NCBI GenBank assembly: GCA_002269645.1
Contig: NIVC01001040.1
Coordinates: 1-64,000 of the forward strand
Source of the DNA: Macrostomum lignano
Taxonomy: Eukaryota
DNA length: 64,000 bases
Direction of reading: 5' to 3'
The notes beneath the pieces were generated by a model. It did not search any database and was not told the DNA's origin. It saw only the letters and a list, made by a program, of their open reading frames with translations. The position numbers and the translations under genes are program-made. Shown one piece after another: positions 8,605-47,405 of this stretch (position 1 is its first letter; each line of letters begins with the position of its first letter).

Positions 8605-8624
8605 CAAAGCCTTTCATGACATGG

Positions 8625-8966: not shown

Positions 8967-9255
8967 TACTTTACATTGCTGCACTGCAGTGCCATCCAAT
9001 ATTGATGGCAGAGAAATTGAAACAGCAATGATTTTATCTGAGCAATGCAGGTGAATAAAAATGATTAATGCAGAACTGCTGTGTCAGTCTGTTGCACCAG
9101 ATAAATAATTCCTAAGATTATCAAAGGTGGATTACAAAATGCACACCTAAACTGTGGATAAAGATTAGCAAAATAAGCCGTGAGTACAAATGCAAAATTA
9201 TTAATAAATTTATAACTAAACTGCATTTGAGCACAAAGTGCCATTGATGAGGTGC

Positions 9256-9436
9256 CACAGCAGGGTGAATTGAAGGCAGCAAAGTCAGACACAAATTCAT
9301 GCAGACTGCAGTCAAGCGAGCCATATTCAGTACTTGCAGTAGCACAGCTGGGTGAAGTGAAGGCAGCAAAGTCAGACACAAATTCATGCAGATTGCAGTC
9401 AAGCGAGCCATATTCAGTACTTGCAGTGGCACAGCT
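9256..9436. repeat. 87-bp tandem duplication (2 copies)
   Basis: cacagc.gggtgaa.tgaaggcagcaaagtcagacacaaattcatgcaga... starts at 9256 and 9343. Confidence 0.9.
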
Positions 9437-9734
9437 GGCTGCACCGGATGCAGACTTGGTCAGTGAAATGCGGGATGCTCAGGCGGTGACCTCAGCGGCT
9501 CATTCGGAAAATCCCTGACAGCTGCGGGATTAAAAATGTTGTTTAATCAGCTCAGGGGTGTCAAATGAATGTCTGCAAAGAATGGACTGCCTCATTGGAG
9601 CCTCTGAATTGACCTGAACTACAAATGACCTTAGATGAACCCACAGATCTAACCATGACATTGCATGACCCCACAGACCTAAGCATTACCTTAGATGACC
9701 CAACAGACCTGACCTTAGACGACCCACCAACTTA

Positions 9735-9978
9735 ATCATGACCTTATATGACCTCATAGACCTTATCATGAAGCTAGATGACACCACAGATGTAAGCATG
9801 ACCTTAGATGACCTCATAGACCTAATCATGAAGCTAGATGACACCACAAATGTAAGCATGACTTTAGATGACCTCATAGACCTAATCATGAAGCTAGATG
9901 ACACCACAGATGTAAGCATGACCTTAGATGACCTCATAGACCTAATCATGAAGCTAGATGACACCACAGATGTAAGCT
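9735..9978. repeat. 60-bp tandem repeat, about 4 copies, with degenerate shorter units upstream
   Basis: Unit atgaccttagatgacctcatagacctaatcatgaagctagatgacaccacagatgtaagc. Confidence 0.93.
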
Positions 9979-14500: not shown

Positions 14501-16341
14501 CGTTTCATGTCAACCTGCTTAAGAAGTACAATTCACGGGAGACGGTTTTGATGCAGCTTCCAGCGGCAGCTACGAGTGCTCCTGAGTTGTCCGAACATCT
14601 GACACCGGCCGAGAGAGATCGTCTCCTGCAGCTGGTGCAGGACTTCGCGGGCGTCTTCAGCGAGATCCCGGGCAGGACTGACCTAGTGGAGCACCGTATC
14701 CGGACGACATCTGACCGCGTAGTGCGCATCCGGCCGCGACGGGAGCCGCAGGCGCATCAGCAGGTGCTCCAAGAGGAGATTCAACGCATGCTGGACCTCG
14801 GGGTGATCGAACCATCTGACAGTGACTACTGCTCCCCGGTCTGTCTGGTGGCCAAGAAAGACAGCTCAGTCCGGTTCACTGTCAACTTCAAGGCGCTGAA
14901 TGAGCTTGTGGCCTTCGACTCGTATCCGATGAAGAACATCGAGAACCTACTGGAGCGGGTCGCCAAGGCCAAGTTCATATCTAAGCTAGACTGCTGCAAG
15001 GGCTACTGGCAAATTCCACTGTACGAGGATTCAAAGCGATTGACGGCTTTCGCGGCCTGCGGCAAGCTGTATCAATTTACTGTGATGCCCATGGGCTTAA
15101 ACTGCAGCAGCGCGACGTACCAAAGGCTCATGGACAAGCTGTTCCAAGGGCTGGACAACGCGGACTCCTACATCGATGACATCGCCGTGTTTAGCGCGAC
15201 TTTCGAGCAGCACGTCGAGGACCTGAGAGAAGTGTTCGGTCGCCTTAAGGCTGCCGGTCTAACGGTGCAGCCCCGAAAGTGCTACCTGGGCGGCAACTCT
15301 GCTGACTACCTGGGTTTCAAGCTCGGCGGAGGCGAGATCGGTACAAGCGAGGACCGAGTGCCGACAATCACGGCGCTGGCTCAGCCCCGGACCAAGGCTC
15401 AGCTGCGATCTGTGCTCGGAGTGCTCAACCACTACCGTCGGTTCGTGCCCGATTACTCAGAAAAGGTGGCGGCCTGACGGACCTCACGAAGAAGTCGGCA
15501 CCCGATGACCTGACGGCGGCCTGGGGAGAGCAGCAGACACGAGCCTTCGAGGCAGTGAAATCTCTGCTGGCGAGCGAGCCGATGCTGCGCGCGCCGGACT
15601 ACAGTCGGCAGTTTATCTTGGAGACTGACAGCTCGGAGACTGGGATCGGCGCGGTGCTAACGCAAGAACTCGAGGACGGCATCCATCCCGTGCTCTTCGT
15701 ATCTCGGCGGTTGACTTCGGCGGAGTGGAGCTACGCGACGATCGAGAAGAAGTGCCTCGCCGTGCGCTGGGCGGTCAAGAAGCTGCGGCACTACCTGCTA
15801 GGCCGCCGGTTCGTCATCAAGTCCGACCATAAGCCGCTGCAGTACCTGCAGATGGACCACGCCAACCCACGACTCCAGCGGTGGGCCTTCTATCTGTCCG
15901 GCTATGACTACGAGATCCAGTACCAGCCAGGCGAAAGCAACACGGTGGCCGATGGTCTCAGCAGGATCTGGGCTAGTGACCGACCAAGTGATTTAGTGAC
16001 AGACCAAGTGATTTAGTGACTGACCAAGTGATTTAGAGACTGACTGAGCGATTTAACTTTTATTCAAGTCATTAGTGGCCAAGTTTGGATTGTTTTTTTT
16101 TGTAAGACTTATCCGAACTTTGCGTGACCCTGCGATTGATTTTGGCTTGCGATTTTTCCGGCTTCGATCTTTTAGTGGAGGGTGTGACGGTGGACTTTTC
16201 TTTGTGCCACCCCATTTTTGATAAGTCTATAAATAGACCTGGTGCGCGCCAGAGGGCGATACTTGTTTTTCTCTTTGTTGCGGCTCAGTTAGGAGCCTTT
16301 AGACAATCATCTTATTCTTATTTATTTACAAGAATGCAACA
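11581..16341 (+). mobile_element. Ty3/gypsy LTR retrotransposon of Gmr1 type (gag-PR-IN-RT-RH), three frameshifts
   Basis: 159-bp TG...CA LTRs at 11581-11739 and 16183-16341 (3 differences). PBS TGGTGACAGCGGTG at 11741. Purine tract before the 3' LTR. TSD GTACG/GTGCG. SCAN-like gag, CCHC knuckle CFNCGGPHKKFQC, protease MDTGAD, integrase HHCC and core before RT (YIDD), RNase H (ETDSS). Confidence 0.93.
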
Positions 16342-16825
16342 GTGCGATACGAAAAAACCATGCAGGCCATCTTTCGCCTAAACATGGACGACCTATTGAT
16401 TGTCGCATGCAAATATAGGGGGCGGGTGGAATTTTTGAATAAAGCTACTCTCCCGCTATCTCATTTAGAACTCCGCTTATCGTACAGCGGTGCTGCTCCA
16501 CATCGACACTGCCCTGTCATTTAACACTGCCCTTTCATTAAACGCTGCCCTCCGTCTCTATATTACAAGTGCGTCAAAGTTGAACTAACCCATACTGATC
16601 TTGAAGATAAAGAAAAGAATCGGCCTCAGTCCATTTAAACAAATTTCTCTGCACAGGGAGAGCTCAGAGATTTCAGTCCGTGACAGCGGCACTTTTGCTG
16701 CTGCTGCTGAGCTGGCAGGCAAATTCGCTTGAAGAAGAGCAAAGCACTCAGTTTGAAGCCGTGTGGAACAGCTGCGGCAGACAGCAGATCGGCAGAGAAG
16801 CGCTGCTAGGAGAAGCAGTGTAGCC

Positions 16826-19800
16826 ATGGCAACACAGATGGAGCGGAAGCTGAGAGCGGCGCTGGAGGCTGGAGACAGCGAGGAGCTGCAGCGACTGTGC
16901 GGTGAGGTCGGCAGCAACATCGAGCTGGATGTGGGCGGGTTCGACAAGCAAGACTATCCCTTTGAAGAGGTTCGCCGAATGCCGCTGGCCCATCACGTGG
17001 CCTGCAAGCCGGTGAGCTCGTCGTGCCTGGAGCTGCTGATTGACAGATTCGGAACCGGCTGTCTGACATATGGAAATGGTAGGCTTATTCGTGAGACTCC
17101 AGTGCACTTGGCTGCCCAGCATCAGGACGAATCTTGGATGAAGCTGGTTAAAGAGAAGGGAGGCAGAGGCTGCTTGAGAATTGCCAATGAAGATGGAAAG
17201 ACAGTCGCTCACTTTGCCGCTATGAACAGAAAAAGCAACTCTTGTCTGAAGTGGCTGGTGAAGGAGCTCGGCAGCGACTGTCTCACAGTTCCTGACAAAT
17301 ACGGTAACACGGCCGTCCATTTGTCCGCTGAGCATCAGGGCATCGAGTCGCTGGAGTGGATCAAGAGACAGATCGGAACTGACTGCTTTCGGCTGAACAG
17401 AGGGTTCTGGAAGAGAACGGCATTTCACTTTGCTGCTCAGAAGTCTGACAATTCAAATCTGAAGTGGCTGGTGAAGGAGGTCGGCAGCGACTGTCTCACA
17501 GTTCCTGACAAAGACGGTAACACGGCCGTCCATTTGGCTGCTTGGCATCAGGGCATCGAGTCGCTGGAGTGGATCAAGAGACAGATCGGAACTGACTGCT
17601 TTCGGCTGAAGACAAAGAGTAATAGAACAGCATTTCAATTTGCTGCTGAGAAGTCTGACAATTCAAAACTGAAGTGGCTGGTGAAGGAGCTCGGCAGCGA
17701 CTGTCTCACAGTTCCTGACGAATACGGTAACACGGCCGTCCATTTGGCCGCTCAGCATCAGGGCATCGAGTCGCTGGAGTGGATCAAGAGACAGATCGGA
17801 GCTGACTGCTTTCGGCTGAAGGGATTGTTGGATAGAACAGCATTTCAATTTGCTGCTGAGAAGTCTGACAATTCAAATCTGAAGTGGCTGGTGAAGGAGC
17901 TCGGCAGCGACTGTCTCACAGTTCCTGACTCTAGAGGTGACACGGCCGTCCATTTGGCGGCTCAGCATCAGGGCATCGAGTCGCTGGAGTGGATCAAGAG
18001 ACAGATCGGAACTGACTGCTTTCGGCTGAAAGGAAGGCTCGATAGAACAGCATTTCACTTTGCTGCTAAAAAGTCTGACAATTCAAATCTGAAGTGGCTG
18101 GTGAAGGAGCTCGGCAACGACTGTCTCACAGTTCCTGACAGTTACGGTAACACGGCCGTCCATTTGGCCGCTAAGCATCAGGGCATCGAGTCGCTGGAGT
18201 GGATCAAGAGACAGATCGGAGCTGACTGCTTTCGGCTGAAGGGATGGTTGGATAAAACGGCATTTCACTTTGCTGCTGAGAAGTCTGACAATTCAAATCT
18301 GAAGTGGCTGGTGAAGGAGCTCGGCAGCCACTGTCTCACAGTTCCTGACGAATACGGTAACACGGCCGTCCATTTGGCCGCTCGGCATCAGCCAGTCGAC
18401 TCTCTGCAGTTCATTTTTGACCAAATCGGAGCCGAAATGTTCAGCTTGAAGAACAACAGGGGCGAAACACCGGCTGATGTTGTTGCGAGTCGGTGGTGCT
18501 ACGCAGACCAGTCAGAAAAGCGGGACTGGATTTCTTCCACGCAGCGGCGGCTCGAAGCCTCTCGGCCTCCCGCTGGCAGCTCAGCGCCGACTGCCGCCTC
18601 AGCTGGGTGAGTCCTGACTGAGAGCTGCTGCCTGACACTGAAAATACTGAAAATATTGTTTGGCGAAAATTCATTGCGCTTTGATGATCGGCGCCCTGAA
18701 ATTCTCAGCAGCGCCGCAGTCAAGCGAGGGCGTCATGAATCTGTCAGTGCAGCTCCTCATGGCGCCTCCAATCTCCCCATGGCGCCCCCAACCTCCCCAA
18801 GGCCACCCCAACTTCCCCATGGCGCCTCTAATCTCCACAAAGCGCCCCCAAACTTCCCACAGCTCGATTCCAGGAGTTTTTTAACACAAAGCATCAGCGA
18901 GTTCAAGTGCCATCAAAGTCTCCGAAGTTTCAAACTCTCCGATTTTAGTCTGAATGTACTTGGTGTGATGTTCAAAATATTGGCACTTGAATGATTTGAG
19001 AGCCTCCAATCTCTTCGTGGCGCCGCAATCTCCCGATCGCGCCCCAATGTCCACATAGCGCCACCCAAAGCTCAATCTGCAAGGCTTTTTATACACGAAG
19101 CATTAGCAGAGTTTAAGTGCCGCCTTGGCGACCCAGACATGTTTAACGGGCTCACTCGTAAAACTCTTCCTACAGCGCTGCAGCTCCGCGTCCCCGCCCA
19201 CGAGCTCGACAGAGCCTCCAGCCGCCTGGGCCGACTCCGGTCGGACTGCCTGAGGAGACTCGGTGAGAAATGATGAGGCGACAGTTGGTGATGGTGAACT
19301 CGTCAAAACCTGCAGTCTGAGCGCAGGCAACCAGCCAAAAGGAACCTGGCACTTCATGGCGCCCGAGGATGCTCATGGCAGAGGGATGGTGACGCAGAAG
19401 GGTGGTGACGCAGAAGGGTGGTGACGCAGAAGGGTGGTGACGCAGAAGGGTGGTGACGCAGAAGGGTGGTGACGCAGAAGGGTGGTGATGCAGAAGGGTG
19501 GTGACGCAGAAGGGTGGTGACGCAGAAGGGTGGTGACGCAGAAGGGCGGTGACGCAGAAGGGTGGTGACGCAGAAGGGTGGTGACGCAGAAGGTTGGTGA
19601 CGCAGAAGGGTGGTGACGCAGAAGGGTGGTGACGCAGGAGGGTGGTGACGCAGAAGGGCGGTGACGATGAAGGGTGGTGACGCAGAAGGGTGGTGACGCA
19701 GAAGGCTGGTGACGCAGAAGGGTGGTGACGCAGAAGGGTGGTGACGCAGAAGGCTGGTGACGCAGTAGACTGAGTGACTCCAAAGTACTCAGAAAGCCCC

Positions 19801-26536: not shown

Positions 26537-29500
26537 TGTAGTGACTGTGCATCGGGCCTAGGTGTTGTAACTAACTAACTTTGAGGCTAGAATTGTTCAA
26601 TTACCTTATATGCATCGTGCGTTCAATCATGGTATCGTTGTTTCGATTGCGTAACACTGTTTTCAACGTGCACATGAGTATAAATATATTGAGCGAGACT
26701 CAAGTGTCTCCAACTGAATTGAATTTAATCAATCAACTAGAACACAACAAATGGCGACGAGCGGACTCCCGTACCCAGCGGAGTTTCAACCAGTACCAGG
26801 CGAACCTCCTGTGCCATGGGCAAGGTGGATAAAGTCATTTGAGAACTTCCTGGTAGCTGGAGCTCTCGAAGAGGCATCAGAGAGTCGGAAGAAGGCGATC
26901 CTCCTGCATCTGCTTGGTGAGGAAGGACGCCGCCGAGCTGCAAACGTCGATGCAAGCAAGTCGCTTCAGGAGACCAAAAAGGCACTGAAGGCGATTTTCA
27001 GCTCGTCGAGAAGCGTCATAGCAGAGCGCTTCGCCTTTCGGCAGCGAGCCCAGCACGACGGCGAGAGCATCGGAGACTACGTGATGGCCCTGAGAGAACT
27101 GGCAACAAACTGCAAATTTGACACCTTTCACGACGAAATGATTCGAGACCAACTTGTGGAGAAAACCTGCGTACCTCGCATTAGGGAAAGACTCCTGATG
27201 GAGGAGGACGATCTGACGCTAGATGACGCCATCAAGAAGGCTGAGCGAATCGAAGCAGCCATCAAAGATGCCAAGCAGGTCAGCGGCCCAGAGCTCCACG
27301 TGAAGGCGCTGAGCAAGAAGCCGAAGCCAGCTGCTCGCCATGAGAAGACCGCAGCAGCAGGTCCAAAGTGCACTCGATGCGGAGGCAACCACGGACACAA
27401 GGGCGAATGCAAGGCGATGGGCCAGAAATGCAGACGATGCGGCAAGACGAACCATTTCGCGAAAATGTGCCGCATGAAAGCGGTCTCTGCGATCGACACC
27501 AAAGAGCCTGCAGAGTCCAGTCTGACGGTCCTGGCCGTGAACAACAAGAGCACAGACAGCTTATTCTGCGAATGCCGTCTGGGCGGACAGCTGATTCGAC
27601 TGCAAATCGACTGCGGTGCTGCCGTTTCGTTGCTCAACATGGAGACGTTCAAGAAGTCCTTCGCTAGGCACCCGCTGCTTCCGACGAGCACAAAACTGGA
27701 GGCATACGGCGGATCTGCGATCAAGACCATCGGCAAGGTCGAGCTTCCAGTGACGTTCAACGGCATCAGGACAGAAGCCACATTCTACGTCGCCGACAAA
27801 GGAGCGAACATCCTGGGCCGCGACCTGTTTCAGGCCCTCGGATTCAAAATCTTCCAAGGTGACAACAGAGTGATGAGCATCAGCGAGACTACGATCGAGC
27901 GCGACTTCCCCGGAATCTTCGACGGTCTGGGCCGGTCCAAGAGCTTCATTCACCGGACAAAGATCGACGCCTCGGTCAAGCCAGTGTCTCAGCCAATGCG
28001 GAAGCTGCCGATCGGCCTGAAGGACGAAGTGACGTCAGAGATCAGCCGGATGGAGCAACAGGGCATCATTGAGAAGGTCGACGCGTCCGAGTGGGTTAGC
28101 AACGTTGTCGTGACGCGCAAGAAGGAGTCCAACAAGGTTCGTCTCTGCGTGGATCTGCGGCAGGTCAACAAGGCGGTGATCGCGGACCGCTATCCGGTAC
28201 CGTCAATCGAGGACCTATCGGCCAGCATCAACGGCTCGAAGTGCTTCAGCAAGCTGGACCTGCGTCAAGGCTACCAGCAGATTCCGCTGCATCCAGACTC
28301 TCGAGGACTGACGTGCTTCATCACCGATGCCGGCCTGTACCAGTTCACCGTGGTGCCATTCGGGCTATCTAGCTCCGGAGCTGCCTTCCAGCGAGCCCTG
28401 CAGACGGTGCTTCGAGGAGCTCCTGGCGCCATCAACATCGTGGACGACATCCTGGTGCACGGCAAGGACGAGACTGAGCACGACAAGAACCTCCGAGAAG
28501 TCCTAGGGCGGATTCATCGCGAAGGCTTCACACTCAATCGAGAGAAGTGCAAATTCCGGCAGGCGAGCGTGGATTTCTTCGGATTGGTCATCTCTGCAGA
28601 CGGCATCAAACCGACCAAGTGCAACGTCGACGCAATTCTAAGAATTCCTGAGCCATCAACGGTCGCGCAAATTCAATCGTTTCTCGGAGCAGTGAACTTT
28701 TTGCACAAGTTCATACCGCATTACTCAGCAATTGCCGAGCCTCTGAGACAACTGCTCAAAAAGGACGCGGACTGGCACTGGGGTGAGCGGGAACGTACAG
28801 CCTTCCGTACACTCAAGTCAGCCGTAACCAGCAGCCCAGTGTTAGCTCATTTTGACTGCCAAGCTGAGACGTACGTCACCTGCGATGCAAGTCTAGACGG
28901 ACTGGGGGCAGTGCTCAGCCAAGTACAAAACGAAAAAGAGGTGCCAATCGCGTTCGCATCGAGAGCACTCAGCCCAGCGGAAAAGCGATACTCAGCCGGA
29001 GAGCGAGAAGCCCTGGCCTGTGTATGGAGCATCGAACGCTGGCACTACTATCTATACGGCAGACGAGTAACGCTGCGCACCGACCACAAGGCCCTGACAA
29101 CTCTGCTCGACTCGAAAGGCATGGGGCACAGGCCTCTTCGCATTCATCGATGGGTCGAGAGACTTCGCGGCTACGACGTCCGGTTTGAGCACATCCCTGG
29201 CGCTGACAACAAGTGCGCGGACATGCTGTCCAGATGGGCCACGACGGAGCGCGTTCCAGCCGAGGAGACCGACGAGGAGGGCTACGTCTACGCAGTCGTC
29301 GACTCGAAGACAACGCTGACGGCAGACGCACTGGCAACGGCGACCAAGGAGGACGAAGTGCTGCAGGCGGTTTTGCAGTACATCTCGGGCGGCTGGCCAT
29401 CGAAGGTGGACAGCTCTCTAAAGCCGTACTTCAACGTCCGGGACGAGCTGTTCTGCTGGAACAACGGTCAGTGCCTCGGTCGTGGTGAACGCGCGATCAT

Positions 29501-30860
29501 CCCGACGAGCCTGCGACTTCAAGTCATCGAGGAGGCCCACGAAGGGCATCCGGGCGTCGTTCGGTCAAAGCAGCGGTGCCGCGACACGGTCTGGTTTCCT
29601 GGAATTGACCGGCAGGTGGAGGACTACGTCAAGAACTGCACGGCCTGCACTCTGGCGGAGAAGTCCGGCAAGCCTCAACAGACGATCGTGACACCAATCG
29701 AGTGGCCAGATGGACCGTGGGACAAGGTCGAGATCGACATCTTCGGCGAGGTCGCCGCGGCTCCTCGACACCAGCGGTTTCTACTGGTGATCCACGACCT
29801 GTACAGCAAGTGGCCGGAGATTGCAGCCATGGAAACCGTCACCTCTGCCAACATCATCAAGACGCTTCGGAAGCTATTCGGCCGGTGGGGAGTCCCGAAG
29901 ATGCTGATCAGCGACAACGGACCCCAGTTCGTCAGCGACGAGTTCGAAGAGTTCCTGCGAGCCGAGGGCATCAAGCACAGCCGAGTGAGCCGGTACTACC
30001 CGCAAGGCAACGGCGGAGTCGAGCGATTCAACCGGAGTCTGAAGGAGGGCCTGGCAGCGAACCTGAGGGCGGGAGCGAAGTTCGAGGACGCCATCGACCT
30101 GGTGCTCAAGACCTACAGGACCAGCCAGCACGCTCTCACCGGGCTGACTCCAGCCGAGCTGATGATCGGGCGCAAGCTGCGGTCCGGACTGCAGCTGCTC
30201 AGGCCAACTCCAGTGCAACAGCGGGACGACAGCGACCTGCGAGACAGTATCGCACAGAGGCAAGCCAAGAATGCCGATTACACCAACAAGCGAAGGCGAG
30301 CTCGTGACTCTATGCTCCAGGCCGGAGACTGGGTCTGGCGACAGACGCCGCACCGAGCGCACAAGCTGGCGACCCGACTGAAGGAACCGCTAAAGATCGC
30401 CTCCAAAGCAGGGCGCAACACCTTCGTGCTGTCCGACGGTACAAAGTGGCAAGCGAGTCGGCTGGTTAAGTGCAACAGCCCACCGGCTGACAACGGCGCG
30501 GCCGACCAAGAGGACGACTGGTTCGATTTGCCGCTGCCGCCGGCTCCGCCCCACGGACGGGCGAGCCGCCACCTCCACCTGAGCTTCGAAGGTCAACTCG
30601 AGCTCGACGGCAACCGGCGCGTTATCCTCTTCCGGAAGGGGGGAGAATGTAGTGACTGTGCATCGGGCCTAGGTGTTGTAACTAACTAACTTTGAGGCTA
30701 GAATTGTTCAATTACCTTATATGCATCGTGCGTTCAATCATGGTATCGTTGTTTCGATTGCGTAAAACTGTTTTCAACGTGCACATGAGTATAAATATAT
30801 TGAGCGAGACTCAAGTGTCTCCAACTGAATTGAATTTAATCAATCAACTAGAACACAACA
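26537..30860 (+). mobile_element. Ty3/gypsy (Mag-like) LTR retrotransposon, apparently intact and young
   Basis: 213-bp TG...CA LTRs at 26537-26749 and 30648-30860 (1 difference). Perfect 5-bp TSD GATAT. PBS TGGCGACGAG at 26752. PPT ggaaggggggagaa. Confidence 0.96.
26751..30689 (+). CDS. Single-frame Gag-Pol polyprotein, 1312 aa (two Zn knuckles, PR, RT, RNase H, IN)
   Basis: CTRCGGNH..C and CRRCGKTNHFAKMC; IDCGA; RT with IVDD; RNase H TCDAS; integrase HHCC and SDNGPQF...ERFN. Confidence 0.95.
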   Translation: MATSGLPYPAEFQPVPGEPPVPWARWIKSFENFLVAGALEEASESRKKAILLHLLGEEGRRRAANVDASKSLQETKKALKAIFSSSRSVIAERFAFRQRAQHDGESIGDYVMALRELATNCKFDTFHDEMIRDQLVEKTCVPRIRERLLMEEDDLTLDDAIKKAERIEAAIKDAKQVSGPELHVKALSKKPKPAARHEKTAAAGPKCTRCGGNHGHKGECKAMGQKCRRCGKTNHFAKMCRMKAVSAIDTKEPAESSLTVLAVNNKSTDSLFCECRLGGQLIRLQIDCGAAVSLLNMETFKKSFARHPLLPTSTKLEAYGGSAIKTIGKVELPVTFNGIRTEATFYVADKGANILGRDLFQALGFKIFQGDNRVMSISETTIERDFPGIFDGLGRSKSFIHRTKIDASVKPVSQPMRKLPIGLKDEVTSEISRMEQQGIIEKVDASEWVSNVVVTRKKESNKVRLCVDLRQVNKAVIADRYPVPSIEDLSASINGSKCFSKLDLRQGYQQIPLHPDSRGLTCFITDAGLYQFTVVPFGLSSSGAAFQRALQTVLRGAPGAINIVDDILVHGKDETEHDKNLREVLGRIHREGFTLNREKCKFRQASVDFFGLVISADGIKPTKCNVDAILRIPEPSTVAQIQSFLGAVNFLHKFIPHYSAIAEPLRQLLKKDADWHWGERERTAFRTLKSAVTSSPVLAHFDCQAETYVTCDASLDGLGAVLSQVQNEKEVPIAFASRALSPAEKRYSAGEREALACVWSIERWHYYLYGRRVTLRTDHKALTTLLDSKGMGHRPLRIHRWVERLRGYDVRFEHIPGADNKCADMLSRWATTERVPAEETDEEGYVYAVVDSKTTLTADALATATKEDEVLQAVLQYISGGWPSKVDSSLKPYFNVRDELFCWNNGQCLGRGERAIIPTSLRLQVIEEAHEGHPGVVRSKQRCRDTVWFPGIDRQVEDYVKNCTACTLAEKSGKPQQTIVTPIEWPDGPWDKVEIDIFGEVAAAPRHQRFLLVIHDLYSKWPEIAAMETVTSANIIKTLRKLFGRWGVPKMLISDNGPQFVSDEFEEFLRAEGIKHSRVSRYYPQGNGGVERFNRSLKEGLAANLRAGAKFEDAIDLVLKTYRTSQHALTGLTPAELMIGRKLRSGLQLLRPTPVQQRDDSDLRDSIAQRQAKNADYTNKRRRARDSMLQAGDWVWRQTPHRAHKLATRLKEPLKIASKAGRNTFVLSDGTKWQASRLVKCNSPPADNGAADQEDDWFDLPLPPAPPHGRASRHLHLSFEGQLELDGNRRVILFRKGGECSDCASGLGVVTN

Positions 30861-34917: not shown

Positions 34918-37900
34918 TCAGTTCGAATTCTTCCAATAGGTACATTTGTTTTTGCGATTCAAAGTACTCGATTCACTGCAGCCGAATGCTCTGGCGAACT
35001 CCTTGTTGTTGGACATAGCGCTGTCAAACTTGACTTGGAAGGCGTTGTGCGGTTTGAAGGGCCGGCTAATCTGGTTTGTGATCATGGTGCTGTAAAAGAG
35101 TTGAGCAATCAGTGTAAAAAAACACCTGATTGAGTTGATTTTGGTCGGCGGATTCAGCTGTACAGAGTTCATCTGCAGCTTGGCTGGAGTTAATCAGCTC
35201 AATGAATGCTTTTGTAGCCAGCTCGATGATTTGCAGATCCATAGTGGCGTGCTCAGATGATGGCAGCGCTGACTCAGTATCTGCAAGTTGCTGATCCGTT
35301 GCGTTGTCTACCGAACGGTTGGTTCGAATATTCGCTACATTATTCCTAGCTTTACCGTCCATAGCACGACGGTCTTCTGCGTGTTGACAACCAGGCCGAC
35401 GCTCGCCGCAACGGCAACCAGCCTATCCAGCTGTCGTTGGGCGCCCTCGACGGTCGAGGACAGCAGGGCGAGGTCATCGGCGTAGCCAAGCACCCTGAGC
35501 CGTCTCTCCGGTTGGCGTCGACCCACGCGTCGCCGCAGCAGGAAGCCGTCGTCGTTGGAAGGCAGAGCAGTCCGTAGCACCCAGTCAAGCATCAGAATAA
35601 ATAGGAACGGCGCTAGCGTATCTCCATGGAGCACCCCGGAGGATGTCTCGTAGAAATCCGATAGGCCGTCCGGTGTTGAGACAGCAGCCGTCGTGCCGTG
35701 GTACAGCGCCATGACAGCAGAAATCAGCAGCACTGGCACGTTGTACGCACGGAGCACCTCTGGGAGCGCGTCCCTCACGACCGAGTCGAAGGCCTTCCTG
35801 AAATCGACGAAGATCAGGATCAGGGTCAACTGGCGGATGCGCGCCTCCTCGATGACTCGCCGAAGAGCCAGGATCTGCGTCACTGTGCCGCGATGGGGCC
35901 GGAATCCGTTCTGCTCAGGCCGCAGGTACGGGTCCAGCACAGGCTGTAGCCGCGATAGCAGAATGCGGTTGAACAGCTTCGCGGCGCAGGACTGTAGGCA
36001 GATGCCTCGATGCTCCTCGAGCTTGGTGGTGCCCGGCTTCTTTGGAATGGCGACGATGTGCGCCGTGGTCCATTCGTTTGGCGCCACCTCACCGGAAAGC
36101 ACGCGGTTCATCAATCTGGCGACCTCAGTGGCCACGCAGCGGATCCGCAGCGCCTCGGTGGGCACCTCGTCCGGATCAAGCGCTTTGCCACCCGGCGACT
36201 GCCGAGCGAACTTCACAACGTCGGCTGTGCTGACTGGGGCAACGTTGAAGCTCTTATGTTTACACGCAGAAGACCGTCGTGCTATGCGTGCCGGACGACA
36301 CCGAGGCTGCAATCTTCTGCCGAGGCGCTGACGGACAGGCGAGTGAGCTTCCAAGATGTCAGCAGTTCGTCCACCTCGGCGGTCTGGTTCCCGACGTCCG
36401 CGAGGATCTGCGGCGTCGCCGAGGACTTGCCTGGGCTGCCTTTCGTTCTATAAGGTCAGTCCTGCAGTCCGAGGCCCTACCGGACCGCCAGAGGGCGGCG
36501 CTGTTCCAGGCGGTGATCGAGACCGTCCTGTTATACAACGCCGAGACCTGGACGCTGACAGACTCGCTCGAGGCTCAAGTCGATGCGGCGCACGCTGGGC
36601 TGCTGCGCGCCGCCTTCAAGATTGGCAACGAGCGAGTCACCAACACGGCGCTCTATCATCGCGCCGGCCTGGCCCGTCCTAGCGATCTGCTGCGCCGTCG
36701 GCGACTCCAGCTGGCAGGCCACGTCATCCGCGCCGAGGCCTACTGTCCGGAGCCGGTGCAGGAGGTGCTGCTACTTACGTTGCAGGCACCCTACCGGCGG
36801 GGACAGGTGAGGACTCAGCGCTATGCCGACTGTCTGCTGGCTGACGCCGGCGCCCCGGACTCTGCCGGCGGTGCGGCCTTTGTTCGCGCCCAAGCTTCGA
36901 AGCGCGCCATCTGACGCTGCTTTTGCGAACTGGCAGCGTACTCTGTTGTTGTTGTTGTTTACTGTCCATTCCTACATTGCTATGAGTAGTGGTATTTGAA
37001 AAAATGGAATCCAGCCTGCTGATGAACCGAAACCAAACATTATCATTTCTCCTAGCAAGAGCATCAGCAGCAGAAAAAAATGTCTGAGCTGTTCAGCACA
37101 CATTTAACAATTTGTTTCTGCTGCTCTGCAATAGATGATCTGTTTTCACTTATTTGGGTGATTTCTTCCACAACTCTTTCAGCGTAGGTTTGAACAAGAG
37201 GTGCGTAGATATTCTTTAAAGCTGGAAGAAAAACCGAGCTTCCTTGATACGAAAGTTCGAAAAAGTCGCTAGTGTACCCCAGCTGTCTAAGTTGATCAAT
37301 ATCGCTATCAGCCCACCAATTCTGAGACTCAAAACTCTGGATAGCAACTTTTTTGACAATTTCAAACACAGTCTCTGCATTGGCTGCATCAGTTAAGTTA
37401 TAGTATGCCGCAGTGTACATGGTGGATACCACTGGTTGGAGCAGTGATTTTGTAGTGTCAAGACAATAATGATTATTAGTCTCCCTTAACAAGCTCGGAA
37501 TCATTTTTGAGAGTTCGAAAAGCCAGTCAAACAAAATTATCTGAGTGCTTGATTTGTCCAGTATTGATTTAAAGTTCCCATCAAGTGGCATACTATCGGA
37601 TGTTAAATTAATGAATGCACCTAAATAGGCAAACTGATCAGGGTACGCAAGTAACAAACGGCCACAGTGTACGAGTGGCCAAAGCCTCGTGTAGCTCTCT
37701 GCAAGCAAAGCTGCAAGGAATCCAACTTTGATAGCTCATCCAGAGAGGCCAGCTTTTGCACAATATTCGTCGCCTTCATCTCAATAGAATTCGTTACGTT
37801 CCATTTCCTTAGGAATTGCAGAAATTTATTTATCTCCAACGACTTGTTGACTTGGCTGCGAAATGAAGCATATGGCGTGATTGAACCTTTGGGTCTCGGA

Positions 37901-39294: not shown

Positions 39295-41085
39295 AGTTAC
39301 AAAGGGGGTGCCAGCTACAGAGGGGGGCGCCAGCTACAGAGGGGGGCGCCAGCTACAGAGGGGGGCGCCAGCTACAGAGGGGCGCCAGCTACAGAGGAGG
39401 CACCAGCTACAGAAGGGGGTGCCAGCTGCAGAAGGGGGGCGCCAGTTACAAAGGGGTCGCCAGCTACAGAGGGGGGCGCCAGCTACAGAGGGGGGCGCCA
39501 GCTACAGAAGGGGAGCGCCAGCTACAGAAGGGCGCCAGCTACAGAGGGGCGCCAGCTACAGAAGGGGAGCGCCAGCTACAGAAGAGCGCCAGCTATAGAG
39601 AGGAGGCACCAGCTACAGAAGGGAGCGCCAGCTGCAGAAGGGGGGCGCCAGTTACAAAGGGGGCGCCAGCTACAGAGGGGGGCGCCAGCTACAGAGGGGC
39701 GCCAGCTAAAGAGGAGGCACCAGCTACAGAAGGGGGCGCCAGCTGCAGAAGGGGGGCGCCAGTTACAAAGGGGGCGCCAGCTACAGAGGGGGGCGCCAGC
39801 TACAGAGGGGCGCCAGCTAAAGAGGAGGCACCAGCTACAGAAGGGGGTGCCAGCTGCAGAAGGGGGGCGCCAGTTACAAAGGGGGCGCCAGTTACAGAGG
39901 GGGCGCCAGCTACAGAGGGGGGCGCCAGCTACAGAGGGGGCGCCAGATACAGAAGGGCGCCAGCTATAGAGAGGAGGCACCAGCTACAGAAGGGGGCGCC
40001 AGCTGCAGAAGGGGGCGCCAGTTACAGAGGGGGCGCCAGCTACAGAGGGGGCGCCAGCTAAAGAAGGGGGCGCCAGCTGCAGAAGGGGGCGCCAGCTACA
40101 GAAGGGGAGCGCCAGCTACAGAGGGGCGCCAGCTAAAGAGGAGGCACCAGCTACAGAAGGGGGTGCCAGCTGCAGAAGGGGGGCGCCAGTTACAAAGGGG
40201 GCGCCAGCTACAGAGGGGGCGCCAGCTACAGAGGGGGGCGCCAGCTACAGAGGGGGCGCCAGATACAGAAGGGCGCCAGCTAAAGAGGAGGCACCAGCTA
40301 CAGAAGGGGGTGCCAGCTGCAGAAGGGGGGCGCCAGTTACAAAGGGGGCGTTAGCTACAGAGGGGCGCCAGCTACAGAGGGGGCGCCAGCTACAGAGGGG
40401 GCGCCAGATACAGAAGGGCGCCAGCTAAAGAGGAGGCACCAGCTACAGAAGGGGGTGCCAGCTGCAGAAGGGGGGCGCCAGTTACAAAGGGGGCGCCAGC
40501 TACAGAGGGGGCGCCAGCTCGGATGGGCGCCAGCTACGGATGGGCGCCAGCTACAGAAGGGCGCCAGCTGCAGAAGAGCGCCAGCTATAGAGAGGAGGCA
40601 CCAGCTACAGAAGGGGGCGCCAGCTGCAGAAGGGGGCGCCAGTTACAGAGGGGGCGCCAGCTACAGAGGGGGCGCCAGCTAAAGAAGGGGGCGCCAGCTG
40701 CAGAAGGGGGGCGCCAGCTACAGAAGGGGAGCGCCAGCTACAGAGGGACGCCAGCTACAGAAGGGCGCCAGCTATAGAGAGGAGGCTCCAGCTACAGAAG
40801 GGGGCGCCAGCTGCAGAAGGGGGGCGCCAGTTACAAAGGGGGCGCCAGCTACAGAGGGGGGCGCCAGCTACTGAGGTGCGCCAGCTATCGAAGGGTGCCA
40901 GCTATAGAGAGGGGGCACCAGCTAAAGAAGGGGGCGCCAGCTGCAGAAGGGGGCGCCAGTTACAGAGGGTCGCCAGCTACAGAGGGGGCGCCAGCTATAG
41001 AGAGGAGGCACCAGCTACAGAAGGGGGTGCCAGCTACAGAATGGGGCGCGAGCTACAGAGGGGCTACAGAGGGGCTACAGAGGGC
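39295..41085. repeat. G-rich minisatellite array, 17-21-bp units around gggggcgccagctacaga, with higher-order periodicity
   Basis: Direct tandem array. Confidence 0.95.
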
Positions 41086-41921: not shown

Positions 41922-44900
41922 TCAATCGCGGCTGCTATTCTGATTGGGCGCCAGCTGCTCTAACTTGCTAATAATTTTGCTCAAATCCTTTTTTCTCTGC
42001 TTATGACGCTCGGACCGCTGCTTTTTTCGATTGGCGCGGTTTTCCTCGATTGCTTCAACTTTGGTCTCCAGCCGCTGCAGGCATTCCTGCAATTCGCGAA
42101 CTGTAGCAGCCGAAACATTCTCCGTGTGAGCCATGAGGATGTCCGTGTCGCTTTTGTTTCGCGTCACCTCCAGCGACAGACTTGGCCGAATGCTGCGCAG
42201 TTGAGTGGCTTGGAACTTCAGAAACTCCCTATACTCATCCGGATACTCTGATGGAAACCAGTAGAAACAGGTCTGAAAAATGAGTTAAACATATGGAATT
42301 AGAGATTGAGTTAGATTGCAAAGGATAGTAGTTTACTTGTGCTACGTTAACAGACCTTGCCTGAAGCAACCTTGTTCTTTTTCTGCGCAATTCGCTTGCA
42401 GCACCAGAGGCAAATTCTGATTGGATACTCCAAAAATGAAAACGGCGGAGGCAGGAAGCTGATGTTTTTGTACTCTTGCAGCATCTCATAGTAAGTAGTT
42501 CGCCAAATTCCGAGAGCTTTGCTGTGCATCTTGATCACAGTTAGGTTGAATCGAGCGATCAGCAAGTTCAACATGACAATATTTGAAAGAATCAAAAATA
42601 TGAACAGCATTAGATTGTTAAACCAGCGATTTCCGACTGCGTGAGCGATACTTCCAACGGTCTGGCTTTTTTCGGCATCAGCAGATTCGAAGCCAGTTCT
42701 GTCGAAGTTTGTAAACATCAAGTTCAACGGCATTGTGATGATCTGCAACGCAGCGTTCAGCTGATACTCTGTTGTGTTCGTCGAGGATGGCATTGCCGTG
42801 ACAGCTGGGAACAGCAAGTTGAAGAAGAACACTCCAAATGAGTAGAAAATCACCAAGATAATCAGAAGGAAAGGAAACAGATCCTGGATGATAAGACTTC
42901 TCAGCATCGAGATCACCGGTCCGATACGCTGGAAGCGGTTGAAGAAGGAAACTGATCGGAATCCCCAGAGCAGGAACGATGAGCTCAGAATCATCTGACA
43001 CGTGTATTGTACTTGTATCGGAACCAAGGGCTCGTTAGTCAGCCCCCGTGCCGCATTTGCTTGAATGAATTTGCCGCTAGAGATAACGCAAAGGCCTGGA
43101 GTATGCGGATTACTGGGAAGGCAGCCCCACATAAGCAATTTCAGCACCAGGCCTGCCCACATGAACAGCAAAGCAAGACAATCGAAGAAGTTGAACGTAT
43201 CTCTTACGTACACCGGACAGTGCCTGATACCGCAAGCCGTGTAAACGTTAACAACTTTGCTACGTCGAAGAAACTCGGTGAACTCCTGCATAGTCAGAGA
43301 GGCGGCATACGCTACCAGAACGAGGTCAGGCGGCCAGTATTGAAACGTCTTAGGAAAATCTGTGACGTACCAAGCGAAGTAAATCATGAAGGCAATGAAA
43401 GAGGCAAAGTGAAAGCCGAAGCGCAAGTTCGCAGTAAAATTGGTGCCTCGACACCTGCGGCCACCTTTGTCCCCTCTTAGCTTACTGCTCCAGTTCTTCT
43501 GAACCAGGTGGTACACGCAGTCAGTAGCGAACAGGTCGTTAATGGCAGCGTCCTCAATCATCTCCATCACGGTGCAATATTTCACTTTGCCTTCTTTAGC
43601 GGCTGGTCGGCAAGGAAATTTTGGTCCCTGCTTTTCGCGCGGCGCATCTTCACTTGGAAGTTTCCCTCTCATGTATTTCATTAGGAGGCGTTTTCCGTTC
43701 CTGTCAGCATTGTTGTAAAGGCCGTCTAGCGCGTTCACTGTGATACCCGTGACTTTGTTGTACAGCCCCAACAGTTTCTCCTGTCCAACCTTACCCTTCG
43801 ATCGATACACCATTGTCTTAAGGCGAATGAGCAGACTGACGCAAGCTGGGATCAACTCAAACTGCCTGGTTAGAAGAAGGTCGGGCAATATTTCTTCTTT
43901 TATTTTGCGCTTCTCAAACTCAAAGACGGCCGCATCAATTATCGATAGCTCACAGTGGGCATCGCTTAGTTCCTCGCCACTGAACAGTCCTTCGTACCCT
44001 GTAGAGTTCTCGAGGTGCTTCAACAGAAGCCGTTCTTCTTTGTCAGTTATTTTATTCAAACAGAACGCACTGCGAAGTACATTCGAATTGTCCATTTCAA
44101 ACGCTTCAATCAGGAGCGCCAAACTTGATCCATGCCCGGCTAGCTTTGATTTTTCAGTAGTGTCCTTGCAAACCTGCCGGGCCGTGGAACGGTCAGGAAG
44201 CGCGAGTGCCCTCTTCGCCGGGTCAATGAGTCTCCAGAGTTCTGCGCCTTCAATTTTAATCTTCAAAGTACTTAGGTTTCGCTCGATTTGATCAATAGTG
44301 TAATTTTCTAACGCAAACCCAATGCAGGACCAGCCACTGTCCGTTTCGGCTGAGAGCTGCAGCTGCTCGTCAATGAGGTACTTGATGTTGGCTTTGTGCT
44401 CCGCCTTGCAAGCAAAGTGCAGGCAGGTGGCACCTTTGTGCATGCCGCCAGGCACCGTGAGATGCAGCAGGTCGCGGCCCGGCATTCTCAACAGCTTTTC
44501 CAGCGGGCCAATTAAGTTTTTCAGCTCTAGTTTTGCGGAAAAAATATGAATTGCGTGCAGGCCATTTGAGTTTGACAGAAGTTGCAAAAAAAGCTCTTTG
44601 TCACTGCGCGATCCTTTATCGGAGCAATGTTGTAAAATAGCTTTAATCGGTACTAAATCATTGGCTGCCATCAGGAAATTATGACCTATAATGTCCACAG
44701 CATGCGGATCTACATTACATTCTTTTAGATCCTTAATGGCTGCCAAATAGCTTGCTGCTTCACTGTCCTGAAAGCGAGTGTAGGGTTGAAACAAGGAGTG
44801 CAGCAGTGTACTTTCTTCAGAGTCAACTGCACTCAAAAGCGAGCTCAGAGCACTATTCTTGGCCAAGGTTGAAGCCTTCGCCTTTCCACTAATTTTTAAC

Positions 44901-47405
44901 GCGGTCATTAGCTTTTGAAAAATCTTGACATTCTTGATTGCGAAATGAAGTACGGATTGACCTTCGTTGTTTCGCCAGAAGAGACATTCTGCACGCTCAT
45001 TCACTAATGAAAATGCGTCAGATTCCATGTCAACACTGCCGATAGCAGCGATGTGAGCCCAGGTGTTCCCCCACGAGTCTCGGTGGGAAAAAGAGTCAAA
45101 AGAGACTAAAAATGCCGGATAAGAACGCCTTGGCCACTACTGACTTGCATACTCGGACAGCAACTTGCAGCAGAGTTATACCATCGCCGTTCTCCCAACT
45201 CAAACAGTTAGTACCAAACTTCTGAAAGGCAGAGCAAATCGCTCGTGATTTCTCCTTTTCTCCGTTTGTTTCGTTTCTTTCTTCATCTTGTGCAGTTTTG
45301 GTTTGCTCTGCATTTTTTTCTGTGTCCTCTCGCATTGAGTCCTGCATCACCTCCGAGGCCGGTTGCCGCTGCTGAATATGTTTCACACTTTCAGTCTCAT
45401 CTGCTAAAATTTTATCATAGCATTCCGACATGCGCATCAGCTTCTTTGTCGAATCGGTCAAGTCCCAACGATAGACGGTGTAGCCTTCAGAAATCCATAC
45501 AAGTCTTTCAGCTGAATTATTGGTAGACTCGGCAATGTCAAGAACAGTGCGATCCAGATTATTTTTCCACTTTAGGCATCTTGGTCCGCCGTACTTGCTT
45601 AAGGCGAAGATTTCCAAAGCAGCCGTGGCGTTTCTTGCCAGGCAGTGCATAACGGTGTCGCCATTTTTGTCCCTGAGCTCGATGCAGTCTTGACCAAACC
45701 TATCAAACAGTTGCTTCATGGTCTGCGCGCTGAAATTCTCTGCCGCCACGTGAAGTACCGTCTTCTTGTCATTGTTCGCCCAAGTCCAGAAATTCGTTTG
45801 AAATATGCTTTCACCGAGTCTCTCGTAACACTTTGCACTAAGCATTACAGATTCCGCTAGCCTATTCTTAGCCAAATAATGCCACAATGTGTTTCCATTG
45901 CTATCTACGTCTTTGCGACGGTGCTCGTAGTATTTAGGCCCAGCAATTTCCTCAAGTAGTTTCATGCTACAAGAGTTTTCCGCCAAGAAGTGTAACACCC
46001 CTTGATTCTCATTGTTCATCCAGGACATTGCAGGAACGAAATCGTCAAGTTTGCACTGTGCTCTCTTGTTCTTTGCCTGGTAGTGAATCACTGTGTTTCC
46101 ATTTTGGTCTTTAAGGCTGCCACTCGGTGCTCCCACTTGACGAGAGGCTTCCTTGAGCTTTTCAAACGTGCTCTCGCTGCAGTGCTGTGCAGCTAGGTGA
46201 AGCACAGTTTGTTTCTTCTTGTTTTCCATCAGCAAAAACTTTTGATTGCAAAACCGATTGCTACTTAATAAATTTTTAGATTTTTCATTTAAAGCCAAGC
46301 AATGCAAGGCAGTGTTGCCCTCACGGTCCTTAGACACTATAACTTCGTCCGGAGCGTGTTCGAATAGTTTCCACAGAGTTCCCTGGTCATAGCAGTTATC
46401 AGCCGCTACGTGCAGAACTGTTTCGTCTGATTGATTCCTCCAGCCAATCCAATCGTACTTATCGTTCGGCAATTGAAGCTGTTCGCTGAAAGTCTCAAAA
46501 GTGTCAAATTTGACGTTTTTATTCTTTGCCAGGCAGTGCCAGATGCCTTTGATGTCGTCGTCTGAAAGCCGAATACCCGAATTGCTCATTAGACTCTTCA
46601 AGGTGTCTGCTCTGCAGTGCTCAGCTGCAATGTCGAACACATTCTTCGAATCGTTGTTCCTATACCTCAAGCAAGCTTTCGGAGATTTACCGGCATTGCG
46701 AATGATGTCTATTGCGTCCAGCAACAATGATGAGCCTTCGACAGCAGCAGCATAGTGCAGTACTGTGTTGCGTCTCCCGTCGAGCTGGAAATCCAGTATG
46801 TACGACTTCAAGCTGTCGGCGCTCAACACTTCAGCAGCTACTTCGAAAACGGTTGCACCTGTGTTGCTATACGAACGGTCCACTATGTCTCGGTACTCTT
46901 TCCTTTGAAAGATTGAGTCAAGAATTTCGCCACCATGAGCTGCATTGCATGCAGCCCAGTGTGCTATATTAAAATTATCCTTATCTGCTTTCAACAATGG
47001 CCCAGGATGCTGCGAGGAGACAAGGTGCTGAACATTCTTATCAAACTGTTCAGAAGAGTGGTATCGAGCAGACAGATGAAACGGAGTGACACCGTCTTCA
47101 TCCTCATCTAAAAGACAGTTGGCGCCAATGCCAGTCACCAGCAGTTCAAGCAAGGCTTCTCCATCTGCACAACCTGCGGAATAGTGCACCGCCGTTCGGC
47201 CCTCAAAATCTAATCCCAGATCAACTTTCCTAAGTTGTCCGCTTCTCTTGTTGACAAACTCGATTGCTGCTGAGAACTGACGCGTCCAAGTCAGCCGCAA
47301 AAGTTCAGGGGGGTCGAGACCAAGGGGTGGCTGTGCGTCTTTAGAGCCGTACTCAAGACTGTACTCGATCAGTTTCCTCACTGAGGCATTGCTGGTCTTA
47401 GCCAT
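41922..47405 (-). CDS. Ankyrin-repeat TRP-superfamily cation channel with TRPM-like S4-S6/TRP domain, about 1790 aa (exons 47405-42361 and 42247-41922; one frameshift near 45100)
   Basis: More than 20 ankyrin-like units. Six hydrophobic segments, FNFFDCLAL, IGPVISMLRSLIIQDLFPFLLII, LSNIVMLNLLIARF, IWRTTYYEMLQEY..FLPPPF, C-terminal coiled coil. The frame after 45096 continues as ankyrin RDSWGNTWAHIAA. GC-AG intron 42248-42360. Confidence 0.82.

Follow-up and report, generated by a model that had tools for sequence, protein, structure and literature searches.

The 64,000-nucleotide stretch of Macrostomum lignano DNA analysed here, hereafter called the window (contig NIVC01001040.1 of assembly GCA_002269645.1, positions 1 to 64,000), contains on its minus strand, at 47405..41922, a gene which very probably encodes a subunit of a TRP cation channel belonging to a flatworm-specific offshoot of the TRPM family, an offshoot that bears ankyrin repeats, lacks SLOG domains and includes the published channel TRPM_MCLZ. 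Once one T and a single intron are taken out, the region reads as one protein of 1,799 amino acids (aa), in which about 24 ankyrin repeats, arranged in two blocks separated by an insert of ~95 aa that is modelled with low confidence, are followed by a helical linker resembling MHR4 of TRPM channels, an S1-S4 domain, a pore, a TRP helix and a tail with a heptad pattern. The design that combines ankyrin repeats with a TRPM core is already known from flatworm TRPM_MCLZ; the novelty lies in a sister expansion specific to Macrostomum and distinguished by an ankyrin array of great length, a Thr in the selectivity filter and a Cys-containing S3-S4 loop. The window gene is one member of this expansion, which comprises at least 20 paralogues.

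The channel half

The assignment of the core to TRPM is carried by comparisons of both sequence and fold. When the part of the protein from pre-S1 to the C-terminus was compared with PDB chains using phmmer, 59 of the best 60 matches were TRPM channels (nvTRPM2, which was the top match with E 3e-15, and TRPM4, 2, 1, 7, 3, 8 and 5), and the one remaining chain was 6pw4, which is deposited only as a “TRP-like ion channel” and which we take to be an algal channel from Chlamydomonas. An AlphaFold2 model of residues 959-1685, with a predicted local distance difference test score (pLDDT) of 69.7 and a predicted template modelling score of 0.62, gave a best 50 in Foldseek consisting entirely of TRPM3, TRPM7, TRPM4 and TRPM8 (E 4e-12 to 2e-10), and because these alignments cover 650-870 columns, it is the linker as well as the transmembrane (TM) domain that is aligned.

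It is extremely improbable, given these results, that the protein is instead a member of TRPA, TRPN or TRPC whose core merely looks like that of a TRPM. The long ankyrin array does match NOMPC and TRPA1 in fold, but no TRPA1, NOMPC, TRPC or TRPV chain appears among the best 60 sequence matches or the best 50 fold matches of the channel half. An 80-aa segment running from S6 into the TRP region reaches 27.8-50.5 bits with every one of the 31 MHR-bearing TRPMs and no more than 22.9 bits, below any canonical TRPM, with each of 120 TRPC fragments, which are exon-sized pieces of 73-157 aa, fetched with a TRPC6-like S6-TRP seed, and which serve for this comparison of scores only. The TRP box reads IWRTTY, as against EWKFAR of the TRPC type, and those non-ankyrin relatives in the exhaustive search described below whose architecture can be identified all carry MHR domains, NUDT9H or both.

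Several residues at functionally important positions can be placed on this framework. The filter triplet F-T-N aligns with F/Y-G-E/Q in canonical TRPM relatives, where the Gly is present in 45 of 45 sequences, while within the Macrostomum group the position is occupied by Thr in 11 members and by Gly in 11. Ca2+ is coordinated in human TRPM2 by E843, Q846, N869, D872 and E1073 (PMC6759353); the aligned residues here are E, E (in place of Q), N, D and the TRP-helix E, and they are conserved in 17-19 of the 20-22 group members compared. The S3-S4 loop, ~36-42 aa long, contains three Cys (GCLPSNPHTPGLC...QYTC) which recur in the paralogues P0001 and P0003. In exon 2 the sequence has V-L-L-L-V-I at what read as the a/d positions of a heptad pattern, although the Pfam family TRPM_tetra gives no match there.

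The domains that would normally precede or follow a TRPM core were also sought. Across residues 1-1300 Pfam shows Ank families only, so that SLOG/MHR1-2 is not seen there; the TRPM2 MHR of Clonorchis P0049, used as a phmmer query, matches neither the window protein nor any of its ankyrin-bearing relatives in groups G1 and G2 (defined below); and neither NUDT9H nor a kinase domain was found in Pfam and domain searches of the protein. PF25508, the “TRPM2-like domain” covering MHR3/4, is likewise not called by Pfam in the window protein. Profile comparisons of the linker with hhalign over the same columns gave a probability of 95.9% (E 6e-9) for G1 against G2, 99.5% (E 2e-23) for G2 against TRPM, and 20% (E 1e-3) for G1 against TRPM, a pattern which supports homology of the window protein's linker to MHR4 by way of G2 and the fold alignments and not directly.

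Compared with canonical TRPMs (TRPM2, 4, 3, 7 and 8, and nvTRPM2), then, the window protein is alike in that these give its best sequence and fold matches for both linker and TM region, in the TRP helix followed by LPPPF, in the Ca2+-site residues of the voltage-sensor-like domain and in a C-terminal coiled coil (here only a reading of the heptads), but it differs in having an N-terminal ankyrin solenoid instead of SLOG/MHR1-2, in lacking NUDT9H and kinase domains, in its filter Thr and in being encoded by just two exons. It shares with TRPN (NOMPC) and TRPA1 the placement of a long N-terminal ankyrin solenoid before a six-TM TRP core, but its core is not TRPN- or TRPA-like, its array is interrupted by the insert of ~95 aa, and the array is followed by a linker and a putative coiled coil of TRPM type.

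The ankyrin array

The array was delimited by several routes. The sequence contains 24 units of the type T-x-L-H-x-A, spaced at 29-49 aa with one gap of 124 aa. A repeat hidden Markov model (HMM) seeded on these units and trained on paralogues recognizes 17-18 units and none in reversed or shuffled controls, and Pfam Ank_2 reaches 73 bits over 9 stretches. In the AlphaFold2 model of the first of the two open reading frames (ORFs) into which the gene is divided, pLDDT is 75-95 across residues 30-600, and a short helix begins at every motif anchor, within helix-turn-helix units of which many have a preceding beta-hairpin; confidence is low at residues 623-769, which correspond to the acidic, Lys-rich insert and a truncated unit 17. 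In fold, the PDB entries closest to this model are long ankyrin solenoids, among them the 24-repeat AnkB (E 3e-15, 695 columns), ankyrin-1, NOMPC (E 1.6e-14, 688 columns) and fly TRPA1. Repeat counts from generic models, namely 1 unit by phmmer with a consensus ankyrin and 13 units by an iterated generic HMM that drifted, are superseded by these figures.

The original prediction, which had been made from the sequence alone, is therefore upheld in its description of the protein: more than 20 divergent ankyrin units fairly describes what precedes the TM region; the S4-S5 linker, S5, S6 and post-S6 segment are TRPM-like, as the PDB and Foldseek matches indicate; the filter lacks its Gly and the S3-S4 loop is long and contains Cys; and the proposed combination of a long ankyrin array with a TRPM-type core lacking SLOG/MHR1-2 stands. 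The gene had further been described as almost entirely one 5-kb exon, and exon 1 does account for 5.05 kb of the two-exon gene.

Two other parts of the window have ankyrin-coding character. A 615-aa ankyrin-repeat ORF at 16763-18610 (+) scores 157 bits with Ank_2 and has as its best matches the ankyrin arrays of the G1 paralogues P0027, P0024 and P0028 (E 1e-96 to 1e-85, ~31% identity); nowhere in the window is it followed by a TRP transmembrane region, and it is either a piece split off from another member of the family or a gene that encodes ankyrins alone. At 388-1728 (+), weak tblastn similarity to the ankyrin region of P0043 (~26%) points to another stretch that codes for ankyrins.

Relatives and the identity of TRPM_MCLZ

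A word-indexed search for relatives returned M. lignano proteins only, while an exhaustive search gave 504 matches at E<=1e-3, which fall by domain content into three groups. The first, G1, consists of ~30 proteins, every one of which, where looked up, comes from M. lignano, and which have the linker, TM region and C-terminal tail of the window protein; their ankyrin arrays bring the proteins to as much as ~2,000 aa, and a few short forms consist of linker and TM region only. One such short paralogue, equivalent to residues 1148-1677, occurs twice in tandem, ~7.5 kb apart, at 582-2264 and 8106-9788 of M. lignano NIVC01000217.1 (locus L003), so that family members without ankyrins do exist.

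The second group, G2, contains proteins of 1,100-1,400 aa from M. lignano, trematodes (Opisthorchis, Dicrocoelium, Fasciolopsis, Paragonimus, Echinostoma, Heterobilharzia), cestodes (Schistocephalus, Mesocestoides, Anoplocephala, Hymenolepis) and one monogenean (Protopolystoma). These have 4-5 canonical N-terminal ankyrin repeats, followed by PF25508 (30.5 and 29.3 bits, with a cut-off of 27) and Ion_trans. In the Opisthorchis viverrini model P0037/P0157 two linker-plus-TM units follow one another, and the core matches twice (P0037 residues 793-1674); this looks like a tandem duplication of a TRPM_MCLZ-like gene fused into one model.

The third group, G3, comprises canonical TRPMs with MHR domains, with or without NUDT9H. 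The MHR3 of canonical TRPMs is described in a passage of PMC13143021, which cites Burroughs 2015, as containing divergent ankyrin-like repeats, and a single match of the ankyrin HMM at residues ~440-500 (MHR3) of the SLOG-bearing TRPMs P0077, P0090, P0125, P0134 and others fits that description.

G2 can be equated with a channel group that has already been published. Sm.TRPM_MCLZ (Smp_333650), the target of meclonazepam in the schistosome S. mansoni, has a three-exon gene and a long N-terminal domain built of ankyrin-like repeats, and it is a Ca2+-permeable channel through which Ca2+ enters on exposure to meclonazepam (Park et al., PMC10788528); TRPM_MCLZ lacks MHR1/2-SLOG and has ankyrin repeats in their place (Sprague et al., PMC11731825, section 3.1), and “TRPM-like” has been proposed as a name for the group (PMC12861061, Fig. 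1 legend). The Sm residues H946 (S4), Y1038 (pore), R1120 and T1121 (TRP) correspond to Y701, Y793, R875 and T876 in Heterobilharzia P0206, with a constant offset of 245. A Tyr at the S4 site has been reported for Heterobilharzia, and the same paper gives F952 for Eg and the variants R1120K and T1121S (PMC12861061); in agreement with the latter residues the cestode protein P0207 has F and K-S at the pocket positions. The constant offset in P0206 and the residues of P0207 together identify G2 as the TRPM_MCLZ group.

Under the mapping scheme validated on P0206 and P0207, the positions of the meclonazepam pocket are occupied in the window protein by S, which stands 9 residues ahead of the GP in the S4-S5 linker, and by I-S, which precedes FLPPP, and because these differ, no benzodiazepine sensitivity is predicted. 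The neodermatan TRPM_MCLZ orthologues P0195, P0086, P0206 and P0041 have no filter Gly (FYSIFEVS), whereas the Macrostomum members of G2 retain it (VGE/VGD), which means that the Gly has been lost at least twice within the ankyrin clade. An intron-poor gene structure is a further shared trait of the clade: there are two exons in the window gene and in its paralogue at locus L001, three in S. mansoni, and three to four in the cestode orthologue of Anoplocephala, with the part from linker to C-terminus lying within one of them.

The window protein is thus like TRPM_MCLZ in the replacement of SLOG/MHR1-2 by N-terminal ankyrins, in its S1-S6 and TRP helix of TRPM type, in an MHR4-like linker with RQF[D/E]xxP, in its intron-poor gene and in its restriction to flatworms. 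It differs in having ~24 repeats where TRPM_MCLZ has 4-5, in its family-specific C-terminal tail with a putative coiled coil and its Cys-containing S3-S4 loop, in its filter (F-T-N, as opposed to IFEVS in neodermatans and VGE/D in Macrostomum G2) and in its pocket (S, I, S, as opposed to H/Y, R, T).

Phylogenetic placement

The main tree was computed by neighbour-joining with Scoredist distances and 200 bootstrap replicates from a 400-column alignment of the linker and S1-TRP region, using 82 sequences less than 90% identical. It separates the 22 G1 and 15 G2 sequences from 45 canonical TRPM-like sequences with 92% bootstrap support, recovers G1 at 100% and G2 at 94%, and places the window gene inside the 22-member Macrostomum group and outside the 15-member TRPM_MCLZ-like clade. 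In a second neighbour-joining tree limited to the 195 columns of the S4-TRP core, the ankyrin-bearing sequences again form one split, with G1 at 97% and G2 at 72%. The linker motif [R/E][Q/K]F[D/E][LIVM][LIVM]P, which reads RQFELIP in the window protein, provides a character that is independent of the tree: it is present in 33 of the 37 clade members and in none of the 45 others (in a smaller count, in 17 of 18 G1, 10 of 11 G2 and 0 of 39 canonical TRPM sequences). To judge from these sequence comparisons, the Macrostomum group G1 is very likely sister to the TRPM_MCLZ orthologue group.

All members of the ankyrin clade for which a source organism was looked up come from flatworms, which bears out the original view of the subfamily as lineage-specific, and a chimeric origin is plausible. 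The subfamily cannot, however, be called unrecognised, as had been proposed, since the same architecture has been published for TRPM_MCLZ (PMC10788528; PMC11731825) and already has a name, “TRPM-like” (PMC12861061); for the same reason the accompanying statement that TRPM channels carry MHR domains and not ankyrins is out of date as far as flatworms are concerned.

Because the tree is unrooted, the choice between a clade nested within TRPM and a clade that is sister to TRPM depends on taxon distribution and domain content. An unrooted tree is compatible with the idea that the clade is an ancient separate TRP family which kept ancestral ankyrins and diverged before the stem of TRPM and TRPS acquired SLOG, and this would be the original idea in its strongest version. 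TRPS (soromelastatin, ced-11-like), the sister family of TRPM, has a related TM region together with SLOG and Nudix domains, while ankyrin repeats cannot be detected in it (PMC7306681), which is the reverse of the window protein, where ankyrins are present and no SLOG or NUDT9H was found. The ankyrin-free common ancestor of TRPM and TRPS has been inferred only from the absence of ankyrin-bearing forms of this kind (PMC7306681), and the MHR3 of canonical TRPMs, which according to a passage of PMC13143021 holds ankyrin-like units, is matched by the ankyrin HMM at residues ~440-480 in several of these proteins. The clade members looked up are nevertheless all flatworm, so that an ancient family would require losses in every other phylum; moreover the sister group G2 has a TRPM2-like MHR3/4 domain, and the intron-poor gene structure suggests a secondary origin. 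The ancient family is for these reasons given only a slim chance, and an offshoot of the TRPM family is the preferred reading.

The frame break near 45100

The sequence as given does contain the frameshift near 45100 that had been flagged in the original prediction, in the form of one extra T in the T4 run at 45098-45101, and deletion of one T yields an ORF of 1,799 aa with zero internal stops. The frame of ORF2 is open upstream of its first ATG as far as ~45125, overlapping the end of ORF1 (“...VVAKAFLSGIFSLF*” as against “WPRRSYPAFLVSFDSFSHRDSWGNTW...”), and this upstream part encodes a conserved ankyrin unit, RDSWGNTWAHIAAIG. A bridging intron was considered by listing every GT..AG pair with a suitable phase: one candidate, of just 28 nt, is implausible, and those of 91 nt and 109 nt were rejected because they would remove the conserved unit.

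Two independent comparisons show that the halves on either side of the break are parts of one gene. The paralogue P0001, 60% identical to the window protein, lies at locus L001 (GCA_002269645.1), where two exons consist of a single 1,728-aa ORF (5.19 kb) and a short last exon; it is collinear with residues 6-1671 and 1687-1779 of the model in single high-scoring segment pairs, and it is continuous at the position of the break (“...CLSWKNDFGISLFQISIRYCDSKFLRDVLTEVRKTDLEKNLSRRDSWGNSVAHIAADN...”). The M. lignano protein P0015 (UniRef A0A1I8HFS7), which the exhaustive search found to be 99% identical to the window gene over the channel half, has the same N- and C-termini as the 1,799-aa model and an identical spliced exon 1/exon 2 junction, so that ankyrin N-terminus and channel are already united in an independent annotation. 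Its near-identity also confirms M. lignano as the source of the window. The tail encoded by exon 2 is homologous to the tails of paralogues.

That the region holds two genes, one for an ankyrin-only protein and one for a shorter channel starting at Met793, is very unlikely. The ATG of ORF2 does lie just past the break, and short paralogues without ankyrins are found in tandem at L003, but the ORF2 frame runs upstream of that ATG through the RDSWGNTWAHIAAIG unit and overlaps the frame of ORF1, the paralogue at L001 is continuous across the junction, and P0015 and P0002 both connect the same N-terminus to the channel. For the exact products of ORF1, ORF2 and P0206, nothing is on record in public assemblies.

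The single gene therefore has a break that is either real or an artefact. It is most likely, at about three to one, that the extra T is a homopolymer-length error of the assembly. The alternative, which is unlikely but has an appreciable share of the probability, is that the extra T is real and the gene is a young pseudogene whose protein is cut after the ankyrin block, functional near-identical copies or paralogues being retained elsewhere in the genome. The break is after all present in the sequence, the independent model P0015 leaps across its region, the gene has retrotransposon ORFs and a minisatellite as neighbours, an ankyrin-only piece of this family, detached from any channel, is found at 16763-18610, and cluster listings show many near-identical copies in M. 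lignano; on the other side, the extra T is the sole defect across 5.4 kb in which both halves are otherwise open, it sits in a homopolymer, and assemblies of M. lignano are known to differ by indels. The evidence for the last point comes from P0015, in which the segment “DRFDKEADAH” corresponds to the window DNA after “RWDL” read in a shifted frame, so that single-base indels must distinguish the assemblies. Relative to the window, P0015 has shifted-frame stretches at 45400-45480 and 46500-46600.

P0015 jumps over residues ~651-972, about 320 residues in all, and the public model is wrong in the middle of the gene, where it is mis-spliced. The analysis thus draws attention to two probable defects of the public data, a miscounted homopolymer in the assembly and faulty splicing in the gene model.

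Several observations weigh against reading this gene as an intact member of a TRPM offshoot. The frame is broken in the window as given, and the skip of residues ~651-972 in P0015 could mean that the break is present in another assembly as well. Direct profile similarity between the linker and canonical MHR4 is weak (20%, E 1e-3), and Pfam makes no PF25508 call in the window protein. The core-only tree of 195 columns unites the two ankyrin groups at just 38% bootstrap, and the trees are distance-based and unrooted, built from sequences that do not include full-length TRPC, TRPN, TRPA or TRPV or labelled TRPS.

Predicted function and significance

As a TRPM-type subunit, the protein would be expected to form tetramers, with four subunits held together by the TM domain and the putative coiled coil at the C-terminus around a non-selective cation pore that is probably permeable to Ca2+. 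The permeability to Ca2+ is made probable by the neodermatan TRPM_MCLZ orthologues, which also lack the filter Gly and among which Sm.TRPM_MCLZ conducts Ca2+ (PMC10788528). Gating or modulation may take place through the S1-S4 pocket, because the protein keeps the Ca2+-coordinating residues of TRPM (E, N, D and the Glu of the TRP helix, with E in place of Q). Ligands are bound in this pocket by TRPM_MCLZ, TRPM_PZQ and TRPM8. The ankyrin solenoid could act as a cytoplasmic tether or as a platform for interactions, and the many paralogues may have taken on diversified sensory roles, given how large and how divergent the expansion is.

A more far-reaching proposal, which is improbable, takes one of two forms. 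In the first, the solenoid of ~24 repeats would be a tether or gating spring like that of NOMPC, and the channels of the Macrostomum expansion would be gated mechanically or otherwise through the tether, in which case the TRPN design would have been independently re-invented on a TRPM core. In the second, the ankyrin clade would be a relic of the TRPM stem from before the acquisition of SLOG, which would overturn the “ankyrin-free TRPM/TRPS ancestor”.

On the preferred reading of the clade as a flatworm offshoot of TRPM, its members are of interest in several respects. TRPM_MCLZ and TRPM_PZQ are the two validated anthelmintic TRP targets, and a tractable free-living flatworm is now seen to have orthologue-type TRPM_MCLZ-like genes alongside a large sister expansion in which the ankyrin arrays are very long. 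A common linker motif and an intron-poor gene structure run through the whole ankyrin clade. Transgenesis and RNA interference are established in M. lignano, which can therefore serve as a model for the role of an ankyrin module on a TRPM core. The clade also provides natural variation where canonical TRPMs show none, with Gly or Thr in the filter and D or E in place of Q at the Ca2+ site, and it is a test case for the claim that ankyrins were lost before TRPM and TRPS split.

Gene layout

Table 1. Coordinates in the window of the TRP gene and of the features of the encoded protein (residues numbered in the 1,799-aa model)
Feature	Position	Strand	Description and evidence
Whole coding region	41922..47405	-	ATG at 47405, stop TGA at 41924-41922; 1,799 aa
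ORF1	47405..45096	-	769 aa, dense in ankyrin motifs
ORF2	45028..42347	-	893 aa; further ankyrin units, helical region, six transmembrane helices
Exon 1	42356..47405	-	5,050 nt; ankyrin array, linker, S1-S6, TRP helix
Sole intron	42273..42355	-	83 nt, GT..AG, GTCTGT...TTTTTCAG, phase 0, directly after “...ASGK”
Exon 2	41922..42272	-	0.35 kb; C-terminal tail with heptad-patterned, putative coiled-coil segment at ~41952-42104, stop codon
T4 homopolymer with +1 frame break	45098..45101	-	removal of one T gives continuous ...GIFSLFDSFSHRDSWGNT...
Ankyrin block 1, units 1-16 (residues ~60-640)	45486..47228	-	Pfam, repeat HMM, AlphaFold2, fold matches
Acidic and Lys-rich insert, ~95 aa (residues 641-735)	45201..45485	-	pLDDT <50 from residue 623 on; probably disordered
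Ankyrin block 2, units 17-24 (residues 736-1045)	44270..45200	-	spans the frame break; last units modelled as helical hairpins
Helical linker domain (residues 1046-1320), putative counterpart of TRPM MHR4/pre-S1	43445..44269	-	hhalign, Foldseek
RQFELIP motif (residues 1180-1186)	43847..43867	-	marker of the ankyrin-bearing flatworm clade
S1-S4 voltage-sensor-like domain	42941..43432	-	E, E, N, D at the TRPM Ca2+-site positions
Extracellular S3-S4 loop with conserved Cys	43019..43126	-	sequence; low pLDDT
S4-S5 linker, S5, pore helix, filter, S6	42515..42922	-	PDB matches, alignment, model
Selectivity-filter triplet F1564-T1565-N1566	42707..42715	-	Thr where TRPM has Gly
TRP helix (IWRTTYYEMLQEY) and LPPPF segment	42410..42514	-	PDB matches, alignment

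Genomic surroundings

The TRP gene lies in a transposon-rich region. Retrotransposon ORFs are found at 26751-30689 (+), 11697-15477 (+) and 35335-36354 (-), and include a 1,312-aa pol of the Ty3/gypsy type (RVT_1, RNase H, integrase), an ORF with SCAN and aspartyl-protease domains followed by one with integrase and reverse transcriptase, and a separate reverse transcriptase fragment. Immediately 3' of the gene, at 39298-41063, is a minisatellite of ~96 copies of a 19-nt unit (consensus TACAGAGGGGGCGCCAGC), which gives rise to spurious “GASYRGG” ORFs. A 426-aa ORF at 2502-3782 (+) has a borderline match to Mab-21_C (24.7 bits, with a cut-off of 24.1).

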